Shown: positions 38,001 through 47,000 of the stretch, one piece after another
How the letters are laid out: each line of letters starts with the position of its first letter
Position numbering within the stretch: the first letter of the stretch is position 1
Assembly: GCA_950097015.1 (NCBI GenBank)
Contig: CATNEN010000031.1
Location: 1,116,001-1,180,000 of the forward strand
Reading direction: 5' to 3'
Origin: Macrostomum hystrix
Taxonomy: Eukaryota > Animalia > Platyhelminthes
DNA length: 64,000 nt
Program-made: the position numbers and the translations under genes
Notes under the pieces: model-generated
Database searches by the model: none
Told to the model about the DNA's origin: nothing
The model's input: only the letters and a program-made list of their open reading frames with translations

Positions 38001-41000
38001 GCCCAGCGCACCGCCCTGTTGATAAAGCCCTGGATGAGGTCTCTGGTGGTTTCCGCCGAGGGGCCCGCGCAGATGGCGGTCACATCGTCGGCATATCCCA
38101 CCTTCAGGGCTGGGTCAGGACGAGTGCTTTTCAGCAGCTCATCCATGACGAGATTCCACAGCAGTGGGGTGAGGACGCCGCCTTGGGGCCCTCCTTTTAG
38201 GACAGGTGCCGAGAGCAGCCTTCGAGGTGGGCCACCACGTGGCGATGCCGGATCATGTACATGACCCAGCGAACGAGGTGGGGGTGAGTGGCCCTGGAGA
38301 CCAGGGCCTCCTCAAAAGCTTCGAAAACAACGTTATCGAAGGCCCCCTCAATGTCTAGGAAGACAGCCAGGGCAAAACCGCTGCCCAGCACTGCCTTCTC
38401 GAGAGTCTCCACGATGCAGTGGAGGGCGCTCTCCGTGGACCGGCCCGCCCGAAAGGCGTGCTGGTTTGGGGAGAGCGGGGCCCGCCCTAGCTCTACAGTA
38501 AGAAGGCGCCAAAGCACCAGTCTTTCCATGAGCTTGAGGCAGGTGGAAGTCAAGCTTATCGGGCGATAGGACTTGACCGAGCGATAGTCGCCTTTGGCGG
38601 GCTTCGGGATGAAGACGACCCGGGCTTCGTGCCACAGCGCTGGTACATAGCCCAGCACGATGCAGGCCCGTAGAAGTCTGCAGAGGAGATGGAGGAAGCG
38701 GCCATTTTTGACCGCTTCATGCAAAAAGGCCGGATAAATACCATCTGACCCAGGTGCTTTGAAAGGGTTGAATGACTTTGCCGCGCGAACGATGCGGTCA
38801 TTCGGGACGAGTGACTGAGCCAGGCCCTGACCTCCACGTGAGTGGTCGTCTGGGCCAAAGTGCGCCGGTACACTCGGGAAGAAATGCCCTAGCATAAGCT
38901 CGAGCGTTTCCTCCGGGCGCTCCGTGATCGAGCCGTCTGGCTTTTTGATCGATGAGAGCTTGGAGAAGCGGTCGTTGGTGAGCGCCTTTACCACGCGGGC
39001 CGTGGGCCGCGAGCCCTCAAGCCCTTCGCAGTATTGTCGCCACTTGTCCGCTTTTGCCCTTCTGACCCGGCCCTTAAACTCATGGATAGCGCGAGTATAG
39101 GCCTCTTTGTCATCAGGGTCGTGCGAGATTTTCAGCCTCCTCTGGAGAGCCTTTGCTCGGCGTCTCAGGACTCCGAGCTCGGGGTTCCACCAGGGGGCCG
39201 ATTTTTTGCCTTTGTAGGCTTTGAGCGGGCAAGCCATTTCGTAGGCCTCTGTGATGGCGCCGCCCAGCAGGGCAGCCACTCCATCTAGGTCCTGCGTGGT
39301 TGCCATGGCCATGGAGGGGTCGGAATCCCGAAGGCTCTCATGCAGCTTTTGGCTGAACACGGGCCAGTCGGTGTTTCTGACATTACGCCTCCAAATAGGC
39401 TTTTGCTTCTTATCGGGGGTACCGATGTTGAAGCGAATGAAGCGGTGGTCCGAGAGCGAGCTTTCGGTCTCCCACACCTCCCACCCCAGCACCCTTGGGA
39501 GGATGCCGGGTGAGGCCAGGGTGACGTCAAGCACCTCAGCCCACCGCCCATTGTCGAACGTGGGCGTGTTGCCCACATTGCAGAAGTTAAGAGGCGTGCC
39601 GCTAACGAAGGCCAGGAGCTCTTCGCCGCGGTCATTGATTTTTGAGCTACCCCAGTGGGTGTGATGCGAGTTTGCATCTCCCGCGAGGAGCAGCTCAAAA
39701 TTTCGTGCCCTGGCGAAATCACAGAGGGCGACGAGGGTATCGCTGACCACGGGGGCGTCGCCTGCCAGGTAGGCGGATGCCACGAGGGTCAACTTGTTGG
39801 GCACAATGTGTGCAGATTGGATGACGCAGATGTCCCCGTTAGAGAGATCGGGTCTCATCCACGCATTTAAGGCTTTTGCAGCATAGATCAGTGATCTAGG
39901 GCGGACAGAGTCTGCCATGCAGAAGCAGTCATAGCCAGCAGGAATGTTACTTGGCTTGTTTTTTGATAACCAGGGCTCCTGCACAAGTACAAGGCCCGGC
40001 ATCGTGCGCTCTGTCGTGCGCATCAGATTGACTGATGCTGCCACGCAGTGCTGGGTGTTAACTTGCAGACATGATATTCCGGGGATCATCATGCAGGCAG
40101 AGGTCTACTTGGAGGGGGACTCAGCCAGAAGGCGGTCCTCCTCCTCCGGGTCGATGTCGGTAGCCATGGGCTCCTCCGTGCCCCGGCCCCGAGCCAGAGG
40201 CGGGAACTCGACGGGGTCAGCCGCCCAGTCCCCACCCCCGGCCCCGAGCCCAGGCCCAGAGTCACCCTCAACCGGTGCCGACAACGCACCCTGGGCCGTG
40301 GGAGGGGCGCTCGAAGGGCCCTGCTCGATGGAGCTGGGCACCTTAGAGGCCTCCCCCGTAGCCCTTGGTTGCGGCGCCTGCCCCGGTGGGCCACCGCGCA
40401 TCTCAGCGCGCAGCTGGGCCATCCTGGCGGTTCGCACCACCTCGGAGGCCCGCTGGAGAAGGCCCCGGCGCTTTGTGATGCGCGCGGGGCGACGCTCAGA
40501 GCTGCCAGCGATGGCACGCTCTGGCCTTTTTTGGCGAGACGACTGGGCCCTGCCCCCAGTCCCAACCTCGGGGTCCGAGGACCCTTCAGTGGCCGGTACG
40601 GTGGTGGGCCCGGTCTGACCTCGAGTTTTATCTGCCTCGAAGGCGAAGATTTTGGTCTTCCACAGACAAATGCAGATGTTGGCGCCATCTGGGTATCGGC
40701 GTGTCCATTGCTCGGACAGGCCCAGAATGGCGGTGAACCCGGTGCCATCGGGGCGCAGGATCGTGCGGTGCACGATCAGGCCCGCTGTCGGCAGCTCCCG
40801 GTTCATCGCGATGAGGCCCATGCGGAGGTCCTCAGCGCTAGTGACGACACTTTTCGCCGGGACGAAAATGCGGTGTCGCTTGGTCTTTGGTGGCTCGTTC
40901 TCCCGGAGGAAGTCGAGGCCAGCCGCCCAGCTCTGCGTGGGCAGCAACTCAAGGAGCCGCCGCCCTGATTCCGCGTCGCCGGGCCAGACGACGAAGCACG

Positions 41001-44000
41001 ATTCCCTGGTAGCGCTTGCGCCGACCGCCAGGGGCTCGCCCTTCAGTTGAAGTTGCCACAGCATAGCATCTATGTTGCGGCAAATGTTGCTGAGCTGTTC
41101 GCTGCTCAGCCTTTTTCCGTCTCTGCCGGTGATGACAACGGCAGGTTGCCTACGTGCGATGGCGGCGTAGGTGGCATGTGGTCCCGGGCCCTGTCCGGTG
41201 GCGACCCCACCCTCGGGATCAGCGTCGGCGGTGGGCACAGGGCCCTCTGCCTCCGCTTCTCCTTCAGGCCGAGCCGCCGTCCGGATGGGCGCCGGGACCT
41301 CCTTGGCCCGCGACCCTGGCCTCGGGGCGTCGTGGGCTCCGCCCCGTGCAGGAGCCTGGGCAGGAGGCGCAAGGCCCCCCGCCCCAGCCCCCGCCCTAGG
41401 CAGAGCCCCTTCGGCCCCTCTGGCCTGGGCCCGGTCCTCGGTCGATGGAGCCGGCTTGCCGTGGGCCATTAAGCGCCTACGACGCTTTGCCGCTCCAGAG
41501 GTTGTGGAGCGCTTAGCGCCCCGGTCATCGCGCGAGTTGGGCAGCGCGGCATTTGTGGCGGTCGCGGGGCCAGCTAGCCCGGGCGCCGCAGCGTGTATGG
41601 CCTCGGGCACCATGGTGTCCTCGGCCGGAGCAGTTGGAAGGCTGGAAGCCATTAGAAGCTGCAATGAGGAGAGGGGCTTCCTGTAGACACAGGCAGGAAT
41701 AACCCGCTCAGCCGCGATCCCAAAGCTGAGCGGGGGCAGCCAAAAAAGACAAGTTACAACCCGGGGTGGGATGCCAGGACCACCGGGAGGAACCGTAGGA
41801 GGCCAGACTACTCCCTGGTCAAGCGTCCATCAGCACGGTCAACACTGGGACATTAGAGGGCGCTATTTGGCCAGCGCCGAGGCCTGCGGACTGGCCGCAT
41901 ACCCTGTTAAGGTCAAAGGGTGACACCTTTCCCTCAGAGCGTAGCCAGAGGTACCTGATCACGCACAGGTGCACGAACGCTGCGGACTGGCCGCATACCC
42001 TGTTTAGGTCAAAGGGTGACACCTTTCCCTCGGAGCCGTAGCCAGAGGTACCTGATCACGCACAGGTGCACGAACGCTGCGGACTGGCCGCATACCCTGT
42101 TAAGGTCAAAGGGTGACACCTTTCCCTCCAGCCGGGGCTAGAGGTACCCAGTTAGGCCGGAGGCCCTGGATGGGTCATCCAGCGCTGTTGCCCATTCTGT
42201 CCGGCTGCCCTAGGGTCAGCCTTGAACACTCGCGGGACGTGTACCCATGGGTCAGCTGACGGGACAACGTGGAGAGGATTCCTGCACCCGGAGGCACAGG
42301 GCTCCATTCCTGCCAAGCCTGCTCAAAAGACGACTGCAGGTGTGAGGCATCGCAGACCTTAGCCCGTAGGCCTGGTCTGACTCATACCACACAGGCATTG
42401 TGTCCCGCCGGTGCGAGCCTCTTTCGGAGTTGCTAACCAGGGCTGTGCGGGTTGTGAATTCACAAAAACTGGGTACCAGGTGCCGGGTAATATTTTCTCA
42501 AGCATTTCGGGTATCGGGTACCGACTTGCTGAAATAAGCCTGTGTTAATGGACACCGGGTACCGGCTATTTACTTTTTCCTCACCTCACCATCCCCAATT
42601 TCCACCAGATCCCCGATCCCCGTTCCCATTCTCAATTTCAGAATTGTTGCTTTTTTGACACAATAAAAGGTTAAAGTCTACTACAAGGTTTTATGTCAAG
42701 TCAGTTTAAGTCAGCTTAATTGTTCAGAGCAACCCCAGTCAGTTTTTAACTTTGTGTGAATAGATTGCACTAAAATTCAATCTAACTCCTAACCTCTGCA
42801 CTCCTCACCTCTCTCCTCTCCTCTCCTGAACTCTACCCTACTCTTATAAGTTATATCCTCTCTTCTCTCCTCTCCTTAGCTCTACCCTACTCTTCTCTCT
42901 TCTCCTCAGCTCCACCCTACTCTTCTCTCTTCTCCTCAGCTCTACCCTACTCTTCTCTCCTCTCCTTAGCTCTACCCTACTCTTCTCTCCTCTCCTCAGC
43001 TCTACCCTACTCTTCTCTCCTCTCCTCAGCTCTGCTCTACTCTTCTCCTCTCCTCAGCTCTACCCTATACTCTTCTCTCCTCTCCTTAGCTCTACCCTAC
43101 TCTTCTCACCTCTCCTCAGCTCTACCCTACTCTTCTCTCCTCTCCTCAGCTCTGCTCTACTCTTCTCCTCTCCTCAGCTCTACCCTACTCTTCTCTCCTC
43201 TCCTCAGCTCTGCTCTACTCTTCTCCTCTCCTCAGCTCTACCCTATACTCTTCTCTCCTCTCCTCAGCTCCACCCTACTCTTCTCTCCTCTCCTCAGCTC
43301 TGCTCTACTCTTCTCTCCTCTCCTCAGCTCCACCCTACTCTTCTCTCCTCTCCTCAGCTCTGCTCTACTCTTCTCTCCTCTCCTCAGCTCCACCCTACTC
43401 TTCTCTCCTCTCCTCAGCTCCACCCTACTCTTCTCTCCTCTCCTCAGCTCCACCCTACTCTTCTCTCCTCTCCTCAGCTCCACCCTACTCTTCTCTCCTC
43501 TCCTCAGCTCTGCTCTACTCTTCTCTCCTCTCCTCAGCTCCACCCTACTCTTCTCTCCTCTCCTCAGCTCCACCCTACTCTTCTCTCCTCTCCTCAGCTC
43601 CACCCTACTCTTCTCTCCTCTCCTCAGCTCTGCTCTACTCTTCTCTCCTCTCCTCAGCTCCACCCTACTCTTCTCTCCTCTCCTCAGCTCCACCCTACTC
43701 TTCTCTCCTCTCCTCAGCTCCACCCTACTCTTCTCTCCTCTCCTCAGCTCCACCCTACTCTTCTCTCCTCTCCTCAGCTCCACCCTACTCTTCTCACCTC
43801 TCCTCAGCTCTACCCTACTCTTCTCTCCTCTCCTCAGCTCTGCTCTACTCTTCTCCTCTCCTCAGCTCTACCCTATACTCTTCTCTCCTCTCCTCAGCTC
43901 TACCCTACTCTTCTCTCCTCTCCTCAGCTCTGCTCTACTCTTCTCCTCTCCTCAGCTCTACCCTATACTCTTCTCTCCTCTCCTCAGCTCCACCCTACTC

Positions 44001-47000
44001 TTCTCTCCTCTCCTCAGCTCTGCTCTACTCTTATCTCCTCTCCTCAGCTCCACCCTACTCTTCTCTCCTCTCCTCAGCTCCACCCTACTCTTCTCTCCTC
44101 TCCTCAGCTCCACCCTACTCTTCACTCCTCTCCTCAGCTCTGCTCTACTCTTCTCTCCTCTCCTCAGCTCCACCCTACTCTTCTCTCCTCTCCTCAGCTC
44201 TGCTCTACTCTTATCTCCTCTCCTCAGCTCCACCCTACTCTTCTCTCCTCTCCTCAGCTCCACCCTACTCTTCTCTCCTCTCCTCAGCTCCACCCTACTC
44301 TTCTCTCCTCTCCTCAGCTCCACCCTACTCTTCTCTCCTCTCCTCAGCTCTGCTCAACTCTTATCTCCTCTCCTCAGCTCCACCCTACTCTTCTCTCCTC
44401 TCCTCAGCTCCACCCTACTCTTCTCTCCTCTCCTCAGCTCCACCCTACTCTTCTCTCCTCTCCTCAGCTCCACCCTACTCTTCTCTCCTCTCCTCAGCTC
44501 CACCCTACTCTTCTCTCCTCTCCTCAGCTCCACCCTACTCTTCTCTCCTCTCCTCAGCTCTGCTCTACTCTTCTCTCCTCTCCTCAGCTCCACCCTACTC
44601 TTCTCTCCTCTCCTCAGCTCTGCTCTACTCTTCTCTCCTCTCCTCAGCTCCACCCTACTCTTCTCTCCTCTCCTCAGCTCCACCCTACTCTTCTCTCCTC
44701 TCCTCAGCTCCACCCTACTCTTCTCTCCTCTCCTCAGCTCCACCCTACTCTTCTCTCCTCTCCTCAGCTCCACCCTACTCTTCTCTCCTCTCCTCAGCTC
44801 TACCTTACTCTTCTCTCCTCTCCTCAGCTCTGCTCTACTCTTCTCTCCTCTCCTCAGCTCCACCCTACTCTTCTCTCCTCTCCTCAGCTCCACCCTACTC
44901 TTCTCTCCTCTCCTCAGCTCTACCCTACTCTTCTCTCCTCTCCTTAGCTCTACCCTACTCTTCTCTCCTCTCCTCAGCTCCACCCTACTCTTCTCTCCTC
45001 TCCTCAGCTCTACCCTACTCTTCTCTCCTCTCCTCAGCTCTACCCTACTCTTCTCTCCTCTCCTCAGCTCTGCTCTACTCTTCTCCTCTCCTCAGCTCTA
45101 CCCTACTCTTCTCTCCTCTCCTCAGCTCTGCTCTACTCTTCTCCTCTCCTCAGCTCTACCCTATACTCTTCTCTCCTCTCCTCAGCTCCACCCTACTCTT
45201 CTCTCCTCTCCTCAGCTCTGCTCTACTCTTCTCTCCTCTCCTCAGCTCCACCCTACTCTTCTCTCCTCTCCTCAGCTCTGCTCTACTCTTCTCTCCTCTC
45301 CTCAGCTCCACCCTACTCTTCTCTCCTCTCCTCAGCTCCACCCTACTCTTCTCTCCTCTCCTCAGCTCCACCCTACTCTTCTCTCCTCTCCTCAGCTCCA
45401 CCCTACTCTTCTCTCCTCTCCTCAGCTCTACCTTACTCTTCTCTCCTCTCCTCAGCTCTGCTCTACTCTTCTCTCCTCTCCTCAGCTCCACCCTACTCTT
45501 CTCTCCTCTCCTCAGCTCCACCCTACTCTTCTCTCCTCTCCTCAGCTCTACCCTACTCTTCTCTCCTCTCCTTAGCTCTACCCTACTCTTCTCTCCTCTC
45601 CTCAGCTCCACCCTACTCTTCTCTCCTCTCCTCAGCTCTACCCTACTCTTCTCTCCTCTCCTCAGCTCTACCCTACTCTTCTCTCCTCTCCTCAGCTCTG
45701 CTCTACTCTTCTCCTCTCCTCAGCTCTACCCTACTCTTCTCTCCTCTCCTCAGCTCTGCTCTACTCTTCTCCTCTCCTCAGCTCTACCCTATACTCTTCT
45801 CTCCTCTCCTCAGCTCCACCCTACTCTTCTCTCCTCTCCTCAGCTCTGCTCTACTCTTCTCTCCTCTCCTCAGCTCCACCCTACTCTTCTCTCCTCTCCT
45901 CAGCTCTGCTCTACTCTTCTCTCCTCTCCTCAGCTCCACCCTACTCTTCTCTCCTCTCCTCAGCTCCACCCTACTCTTCTCTCCTCTCCTCAGCTCCACC
46001 CTACTCTTCTCTCCTCTCCTCAGCTCCACCCTACTCTTCTCTCCTCTCCTCAGCTCTACCTTACTCTTCTCTCCTCTCCTCAGCTCTGCTCTACTCTTCT
46101 CTCCTCTCCTCAGCTCCACCCTACTCTTCTCTCCTCTCCTCAGCTCCACCCTACTCTTCTCTCCTCTCCTCAGCTCCACCCTACTCTTCTCTCCTCTCCT
46201 CAGCTCCACCCTACTCTTCTCTCCTCTCCTCAGCTCCACCCTACTCTTCTCTCCTCTCCTCAGCTCCACTCTACTCTTCTCTCCTCTCCTCAGCTCTACC
46301 TTACTCTTCTCTCCTCTCCTCAGCTCTGCTCTACTCTTCTCTCCTCTCCTCAGCTCCACCCTACTCTTCTCTCCTCTCCTCAGCTCCACCCTACTCTTCT
46401 CTCCTCTCCTCAGCTCCACCCTACTCTTCTCTCCTCTCCTCAGCTCTACCTTACTCTTCTCTCCTCTCCTCAGCTCTACCCTACTCTTCTCACCTGTCCT
46501 CAGCTCTACCCTACTCTTCTCCTCTTATCAGCTCTACCCTACTACCCTACCCTACCCTACCCTGATCAGCGGCGAGGCCATTCTCATTTTAGGGCCAGTC
46601 TCAGAGCTGCCCTAAAGGCTTGGGTGATTGTCGCGAAATTTACTTCCTTGATGGCCAACCTCCATGCAAAGCACAATGAGAGCAATACGAAGCAACCTTC
46701 TTATAGTGGCTCCATCAATGTTCAGGCGTCCTTTGAATTGACCGGTAGTTTTATTCGTGGTACGCCACAATGTCATCCTGAATCCGCAGGTACAACAGCA
46801 GCGAGCATCGTGTGCGGTCCAGCAACATCGATCGTACCCTGATGAGCGCGCAGGCCTGCTTGGCGGGCCTGTTCCCACCGACTGGCGACCAGGTGTGGCA
46901 GCCGGAGCTGAGCTGGCAGCCGATTCCGGTGCACACCGTCGCACACAACTCGGACCCATTGTTGCTGCCGCACGACCTGCCAGGATGCCAGCAGACCTTC

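Follow-up and report, generated by a model that had tools for sequence, protein, structure and literature searches.

The question raised by this locus is how a dispersed retrotransposon comes to have one exact 5' end. The window, i.e., the whole stretch of 64,000 nucleotides that was analysed, comes from the free-living flatworm Macrostomum hystrix (assembly GCA_950097015.1, contig CATNEN010000031.1, positions 1,116,001 to 1,180,000). On its minus strand it carries a retrotransposon without long terminal repeats (non-LTR retrotransposon) of 6,150 bp at 42418-36269, equipped with an apurinic/apyrimidinic (AP) endonuclease, a reverse transcriptase and an RNase H (APE-RT-RNase H). All coordinates given below are window coordinates, features are read on the minus strand, and element position n corresponds to window position 42419-n. 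A first-pass annotation had proposed that a ribozyme resembling that of hepatitis delta virus (HDV) defines the 5' end of this element. We consider it probable that element nucleotides 1-235 constitute a large HDV-like (delta-family) self-cleaving ribozyme with a predicted cut 5' of G1, and we regard covariation across related families as the decisive line of evidence for this prediction.

The element end and the predicted fold

The 5' end of the element was set by the target site duplication, independently of the RNA fold. The duplication, ACTCCGAAAGAG, is a perfect 12 bp repeat found at 42430-42419 and again at 36268-36257, right behind the 3' tail. Since its 5' copy abuts G42418 without a gap, this base was taken as element nucleotide 1.

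From this base onwards a complete HDV topology can be read (element 1-235, window 42418-42184). A script check of the pairs found all helices listed by the first-pass annotation on the minus strand and at their coordinates, in the canonical HDV order P1-(J1/2)-P2-P3-L3-P3'-P1'-P1.1-P4-J4/2-P2', which makes up a nested double pseudoknot. Helix P1 has 6 bp and is formed by GCUCGC at nucleotides 1-6 (42418-42413) with GCGAGU at 186-191 (42233-42228), the latter immediately behind P3'; it includes the wobble G1.U191, and the predicted cleavage site lies 5' of G42418. The peripheral domain in J1/2 (42412-42257) opens with a 3-nt linker, behind which the 9-bp helix P1.2 (10-18 with 153-161, i.e., 42409-42401 with 42266-42258) closes a multi-branch fold. 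The 5' strand of P2, composed of GCUG, A and CCCAU (42256-42247), pairs with a 3' strand composed of AUGGG, CAA and CAGC (42195-42184), giving an inner helix CCCAU/AUGGG (168-172 with 224-228) and an outer helix GCUG/CAGC (163-166 with 232-235) with the CAA internal loop between them. P3 (GGG/CCC) and its loop L3 (UACACGU) occupy 42246-42234. They are followed, behind the 3' strand of P1, by the GU at 42227-42226, which pairs with A177 and C178 of L3, so that P1.1 consists of the two Watson-Crick pairs C178-G192 and A177-U193. J1.1/4 (UCAA) and the P4 hairpin (GGCUG/CAGCC, 198-202 with 212-216) cover 42225-42203, and J4/2, GGACAGA at 42202-42196, holds the putative catalytic cytosine C220 (window 42199).

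When folded alone, the J1/2 insert of 155 nt gave a closed multi-branch structure of -77.8 kcal/mol (z = -4.7), and none of 200 shuffles was as stable. Minimum-free-energy folding of nucleotides 1-249 favoured a non-pseudoknotted alternative for the 3' half, as expected because this is usual for the HDV-like class, and it was not used as evidence. The first-pass annotation had regarded the 6-bp P1 and the large J1/2 as marks of an unusual variant, a judgement that we do not share, as both lie within the published range (PMC4908430, PMC3774820). In R2 elements J1/2 spacings run from 23 to more than 700 nt and are needed for activity in the silkmoth (PMC3774820), while in Agam-2 a P1 of 6 or 7 bp is normal and occurs together with a structured J1/2 (P1.2) and an extended P2 (PMC4908430).

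The HDV motif by itself is weak evidence, because a loose HDV descriptor matched about a dozen P1-bearing sites in the 128 kb of both window strands, approximately one per 10 kb. The full motif was found somewhere in 1.4% of shuffled 300-mers. Its placement is more demanding: when the first 300 nt of the element were shuffled 60,000 times with dinucleotides preserved, P1 fell on nucleotide 1 in 30 cases (5e-4). Rfam scans of the window at the gathering threshold, together with a permissive scan of 42150-42450 (E<=10), gave no HDV-type match (RF00094, RF00622 and related models). This outcome is expected and uninformative on the fold, because the models allow no 155-nt insert in J1/2 and score no pseudoknots.

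Covariation in related families and the ends of genomic copies

An exhaustive profile search with the protein of open reading frame 1 (ORF1) sorted relatives into 23 clusters, four of which had retrievable contigs containing the 5' untranslated region (5' UTR). The comparison here uses three relatives, designated L091, L092 and L094, whose ORF1 is 33-41% identical to that of the window element (33% for L092); the N-terminal half of ORF2 is 61% identical to L092. A core model was built solely from the family of the window element and contained P2, P3 and P4, but not P1.1. It found one match in the 5' UTR of each of the three relatives, at the expected place, with 64.6 bits in L094 (E = 6e-15), 29.5 bits in L091 (E = 7e-6) and 20.3 bits in L092 (E = 2e-3). 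All three have a 4-bp outer P2, an inner P2 of 5-7 bp and P3 as GGG/CCC, an L3 of 7-8 nt with the pattern U-N-N-N-C-G-U, a 6-nt P1' right behind P3' followed by two nucleotides able to pair with L3 positions 2-3, and N-N-A-A before P4, of which the AA is conserved. Across all four families P3 is invariant, as are U1, C5 and G6 of L3, and the J4/2 cytosine falls into one and the same column of the alignment, 3-4 nt ahead of P2'. The CAA internal loop of P2 is kept in three of the four.

In the four-family alignment, which was fitted to a model with P2, P3 and P4 and thereby leans towards structure, 96% of the cells were paired and 10 of 22 core pairs were double-changed in a compensatory manner. 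Controls with a slid register gave 0-2 double-changed pairs and about 40% pairing, and none of 500 column shuffles reached any of the observed measures. Within P2, six of ten pairs were double-changed. P4 covaries as well: L094 has A-U in place of U-A, and the stem is longer in L091 and L092. In P1.1, the A-U pair that the first-pass annotation had described as a covarying substitute for the usual pairs is real and varies in concert with the other families: P1.1 is C-G plus A-U in the window element, C-G plus U.U in L091 and L094, and U-A plus C-G in L092, so both pairs are double-changed even though this helix lies outside the search model.

The 5' strand of P1 could be compared with L092, where the helix reads GCCUGC/GCAGGC with all six positions paired, two double changes and one change of G.U to G-C. 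P1.2 carried three double changes relative to L092 in a MAFFT alignment, and over this alignment of the window copy and L092 nine of 29 pairs were compensated, compared with 0-3 in the slid controls. RNAalifold, applied to the same alignment, recovered P1.2 and both parts of P2 independently. The contig of L092, 6,492 nt long, begins exactly at its own G1 and extends about 520 nt past the 3' tail of the element. Such a layout would be expected of an RNA with a processed 5' end and 3' read-through, but we consider this as suggestive only.

The other relatives were less complete. L091 and L094 are truncated inside J1/2 and lack the 5' strand of P1, in L090 and L093 the sequence begins beyond the ribozyme, and in L095 (ORF1 identity 28%) no HDV-like motif was seen in the 280 nt upstream. 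L094 has a second GCTCGC at L094:76-81, only 7 nt before P2, whose pairing with GCGAGC might give an alternative, internal P1; it may be a coincidence or mark a second cleavage register. The central hairpin of J1/2 (element 24-79, window 42340-42395) is 82% identical to L092:24-80, while the rest of the UTR is at 35-55%.

The M. hystrix assembly that was searched comprises 220,453,370 bp in 42 contigs, the longest of 35,345,953 bp (PMC10468722). BLAST with the 5' 300 nt of the element returned 211 first-look candidates. At 28 of 30 fetched loci the similarity began exactly at GCTCGC and the sequence upstream was unrelated; in a non-redundant set, G1 is the first base in 40 of 41 copies, and their flanks are unrelated. 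The proposal that the cleavage site coincides with the 5' end of the element agrees with the flush target site duplication and is strongly supported by comparison, through the copy ends, the covariation in P1, P1.2, P2, P4 and P1.1, and the invariant J4/2 cytosine and L3 core. A covariance model of positions 150-245 found at least 150 genomic copies with a near-perfect core, at 102-129 bits, e.g., at C31:2220057-2220152. No diverged subfamilies were present among the core-model matches listed, all of which were near-identical copies of the family of the window element. In 30 copies selected by BLAST, shared polymorphisms were confined to the interior of J1/2 and to the region beyond position 235, with none in P1, P1.2 or the core. 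Among the M. hystrix copies, similarity often breaks off at position 439 or 535, a pattern suggestive of subfamilies with differing sets of 5' UTR modules.

Proposed cleavage, its alternatives and known ribozymes

The mechanism we propose would start when a polymerase, coming from any upstream start, passes approximately nucleotide 235 of the element and the RNA folds. P1 would pair nucleotides 1-6 with 186-191, P3 with L3, P1.1 and P4 would form the core, and the extended P2 would close it, while the structured J1/2 domain, closed by P1.2, would keep P1 and P2 together. C220 in J4/2 would then act as the general acid, and the cut would fall immediately 5' of G1, so that the first base of the RNA would be the first base of the element. 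Reverse transcription of the cleaved RNA to its end would make new copies begin at the same G. In this way the template would start at element base 1 whichever promoter had made the precursor, which may derive from read-through or host transcription.

Several observations weigh against this mechanism. The G1-U wobble, which the first-pass annotation had called diagnostic, is present in the window element but is not conserved: two of the four families have C in P1', giving G1-C in L092 and probably in L094, and the G.U of L091 is judged from the P1' strand. In the family of the window element, three unpaired purines, GGA, follow the Watson-Crick part of P4 before the putative catalytic cytosine. 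In HDV itself a single G precedes this cytosine, and a single G is also what separates P4 from the conserved C in L092, according to our own pairing of its sequence. Published descriptions of J4/2 put the catalytic C first (PMC10879173). The nucleotides behind this cytosine are not conserved (AGA, GUG, UGA and UGC), no Rfam HDV model matches the locus, and the comparison comprises four families, only two of them with the 5' strand of P1, in an alignment with the lean stated above. With 40 copies, shared polymorphisms numbered 0 in 101 nt versus 63 in 334 nt, but the sets of 41 and of 40 copies were partly picked by core score, which makes this test biased and supportive only. Among the public runs listed, those containing the element are available as contigs with no library type stated, and none is on record as RNA. 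Contigs of five such runs, aligned to 41300-42800, cover the element up to 42416-42425 and reach no further into the flank; as starts, strand and library type are not readable from them, they were not considered as evidence in either direction. Finally, a precise 5' end is equally expected from an internal promoter, and the uniform ends of the copies fit both explanations.

In an alternative reading, the RNA has HDV topology and is conserved, but does not cleave now or never did, serving instead as a platform for binding the element's proteins or as an element for cap-independent translation, with the 5' end produced by an internal promoter at G1. Among families, conservation reaches beyond the ribozyme part and spans the entire 5' UTR, downstream hairpins included, and the identity of 82% in the J1/2 hairpin, compared with 33% in ORF1, suggests a function beyond spacing. 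The non-conserved G1.U and the atypical distance from P4 to the cytosine point the same way, and in L1Tc promoter and ribozyme are joined in the same 77 nt (PMC3383444). However, the first six nucleotides are paired and covary with the segment directly 3' of P3, and it is this pairing that specifically determines where HDV ribozymes cut (PMC3774820), and the J4/2 cytosine and L3 positions U1, C5 and G6 do not vary in any of the four families. In addition, an internal promoter would need to work with zero contribution from upstream, because the flanks of the copies are unrelated. We hold a non-cleaving RNA to be quite unlikely. Still far less probable is a chance resemblance, in which a GC-rich 5' UTR happens to meet a permissive pseudoknot descriptor. 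The density of descriptor matches in the window and the frequency of the full motif in shuffles would allow for it, but P1 falls on nucleotide 1 in very few shuffles, and three other families show the pairing again in the same register, with compensatory changes spread over five helices; this covariation effectively refutes the explanation.

A different view accepts an active ribozyme but places its main role after processing, either in translation of ORF1 from an uncapped RNA with a 5'-OH, or in marking the 5' end of the template for the reverse transcriptase, release from read-through transcripts being secondary. HDV-like ribozymes are said to promote translation of downstream open reading frames, reportedly in work by Ruminski and colleagues from 2011. 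R2 ribozymes are cited for both 5' processing and translation initiation (PMC5035012), and the approximately 530 nt of UTR between the ribozyme and the ATG of ORF1 are conserved and modular. This role does not exclude 5' processing, and the present data do not separate the two; we see it as a tentative possibility. Another idea concerns the J1/2 insert of about 150 nt, which could be a second functional RNA nested in the ribozyme and not a passive "pinch" domain. It arises because the central hairpin (82% at the nucleotide level) is more conserved than ORF1 (33%) or the N-terminal half of ORF2 (61%), and a role as a spacer does not explain this conservation. The nested RNA might bind a protein of the element itself, from ORF1 or ORF2, which would link 5' processing with packaging or with recognising the end of the template and put cleavage under protein control, and the module might be ancestral to a whole group of Macrostomum non-LTR families. 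As a whole we rate this idea as unlikely.

The proposed ribozyme has close parallels in other elements. R2 shares with the M. hystrix element a double pseudoknot at the element 5' end, a very large J1/2 and a P1 that covaries between species, and in R2 the cleavage site is set by pairing of P1 with about 7 nt directly 3' of P3/L3 (Eickbush and Eickbush, PMC3774820). The conserved R2 block CCUCCUCGUGG (PMC5035012) has, by our own reading, UCCUCGU between CC and GG, which fits U-N-N-N-C-G-U. The two differ in that R2 uses a restriction-like endonuclease specific for 28S rDNA, while the M. hystrix element is of the APE-RT-RNase H type with dispersed sites. Moreover, in many R2 lineages P1 uses upstream 28S sequence, whereas here P1 lies wholly inside the element with the predicted cut at position 0, and the P4 of the M. 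hystrix element has no counterpart in silkmoth R2. In drz-Agam-2 a short linker, a base-paired P1.2 and an extended P2 likewise "pinch" P1 and P2 (Webb et al., 2016, PMC4908430), and the architecture described here matches that of active large ribozymes (PMC4908430). The peripheral domain of the M. hystrix element is, however, a multi-branch fold of about 150 nt, part of which is strongly conserved in sequence, while that of Agam-2 is a single helix; P2 has 4+5 bp with the CAA loop instead of 12 bp, and the host and element family are different.

L1TcRz/Pr77 of the trypanosomatid L1Tc/ingi elements is an HDV-like ribozyme that takes up the very start of a dispersed non-LTR element and cuts at +1, the position predicted also here (PMC3185411, PMC4035085). 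L1TcRz differs in being compact (77 nt) and an internal promoter at the same time, and no sequence similarity to the M. hystrix element was seen. The CPEB3 ribozyme (RF00622) has UUCACGU as L3, compared with UACACGU in the M. hystrix element, with a GU behind it that makes a weak P1.1. Its C-G plus U.U form of P1.1 is shared by L091 and L094, while the P1.1 of the M. hystrix element has two Watson-Crick pairs and CPEB3 is compact and intronic. Ribozyme-terminated elements of the Baggins (LOA), RTE, R4, R6 and SART groups have reportedly been described from arthropods, nematodes and chordates by Ruminski and colleagues in 2011, and they represent the same strategy in AP endonuclease non-LTR elements. 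To our knowledge, flatworms were not among the phyla of that study.

On the whole genome, RF00094 gave no match and RF00622 gave other compact candidates only, none of the seven listed matches being a copy of the family of the window element. A separate HDV/CPEB3-like candidate was found at G000:C38:8568495-8568600 (L063:1512-1617, plus strand) and at G000:C1:21386521-21386593 (L062, minus strand), its sole other copy, with RF00622 scores of 30.3 and 34.3 bits, the cut-off being 35. The L063 copy forms a double pseudoknot of 106 nt with GCGGACC/GGUCCGU as P1 and UUCACGU as L3, and P1 is compensated in L062 by U-A for C-G; the 8 kb downstream gave no match to a reverse transcriptase or any other Pfam domain. 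A further compact candidate (about 75 nt), parsed by eye, lies at G000:C38:33832107-33832192 (L064:1501-1586, minus strand) with P1 GGGGAC/GUCCCU, P3 CCG/CGG, L3 UUCACGC, P1.1 C-G plus U-A, a 6-bp P4 and J4/2 CAAAU. About seven copies of it, partial or full, occur in the genome; the 46 nt upstream of it are themselves repeated elsewhere.

Other parts of the element and meaning for flatworm retrotransposons

Downstream of the ribozyme, the remainder of the 5' UTR (42183-41653) holds conserved hairpins and repeated modules, with homologous blocks in L090, L091, L092 and L094. Modules recurring among families are a hairpin whose loop is of the ACCCA type and a unit GGGTACC...GTCACCCTTTGACCTT (window 41653-42183, L090:1-200 and L094:170-330), the latter being duplicated in L090. 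Contigs from two public runs of a related organism, X3 and X4, have 379 or 186 nt of the 5' UTR (41932-42312 and 42125-42312) exchanged for the same 28 letters, and are thereby variants with an internally rearranged 5' UTR.

ORF1 begins with an ATG at 41652 and extends to 40105; it gave no Pfam match and has relatives in Macrostomum lignano as well as in Logan/JGI contigs. ORF2 (40092-36572) encodes the AP endonuclease (PF14529/PF03372), the reverse transcriptase (PF00078) and the RNase H (PF00075). In the window copy it is split over two frames with a break near 38150-38200, inside the reverse transcriptase domain between the FDNV and PQGG/YADD motifs, and this copy, as assembled, is unable to encode the full protein. 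The closest named proteins among the matches listed come from M. lignano. A distant reverse transcriptase relative, L031, is possibly fungal, judged by a weak Fungal_trans match on a neighbouring gene, and was left out of the comparison. The 3' UTR (36571-36269) ends with a (TCAAG)n tail at approximately 36290-36269, followed by the 3' copy of the target site duplication (36268-36257), identical to the 5' copy; L092 has a homologous 3' UTR whose tail is a single unit. Upstream of the element, starting about 440 bp from its 5' end, lies a CT-rich minisatellite (42860-46543) of 123 copies of a 30-bp unit with 92% match, which accounts for the extreme GC/AT skew at 42-46 kb.

Published hosts of such ribozymes are arthropods (insects), nematodes and chordates, cnidarians in the case of R2, and trypanosomatids. 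The first-pass annotation knew of no such element in this kind of host, and our literature search likewise found no paper linking retrotransposon HDV-like ribozymes to flatworms. According to a report from 2021 (PMC8501958), none of the 17 non-LTR elements of Schistosoma had been tied to ribozymes before twister variants were found. The host phylum and the element family appear new for a known HDV-like mechanism, which itself is left unchanged. If true, the finding would add Platyhelminthes to the groups in which ribozymes process the 5' ends of non-LTR retrotransposons, here in an abundant and dispersed APE-RT-RNase H family of which the 220-Mb genome contains about 200 full-length 5' ends. 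Judged from sequence comparison, it would be a natural and well-supported case of a large HDV-like ribozyme whose peripheral domain is complex and partly conserved in sequence, of a class that Rfam models miss, and the exact 5' boundary that it provides can serve in annotation of the repeat family in Macrostomum genomes.

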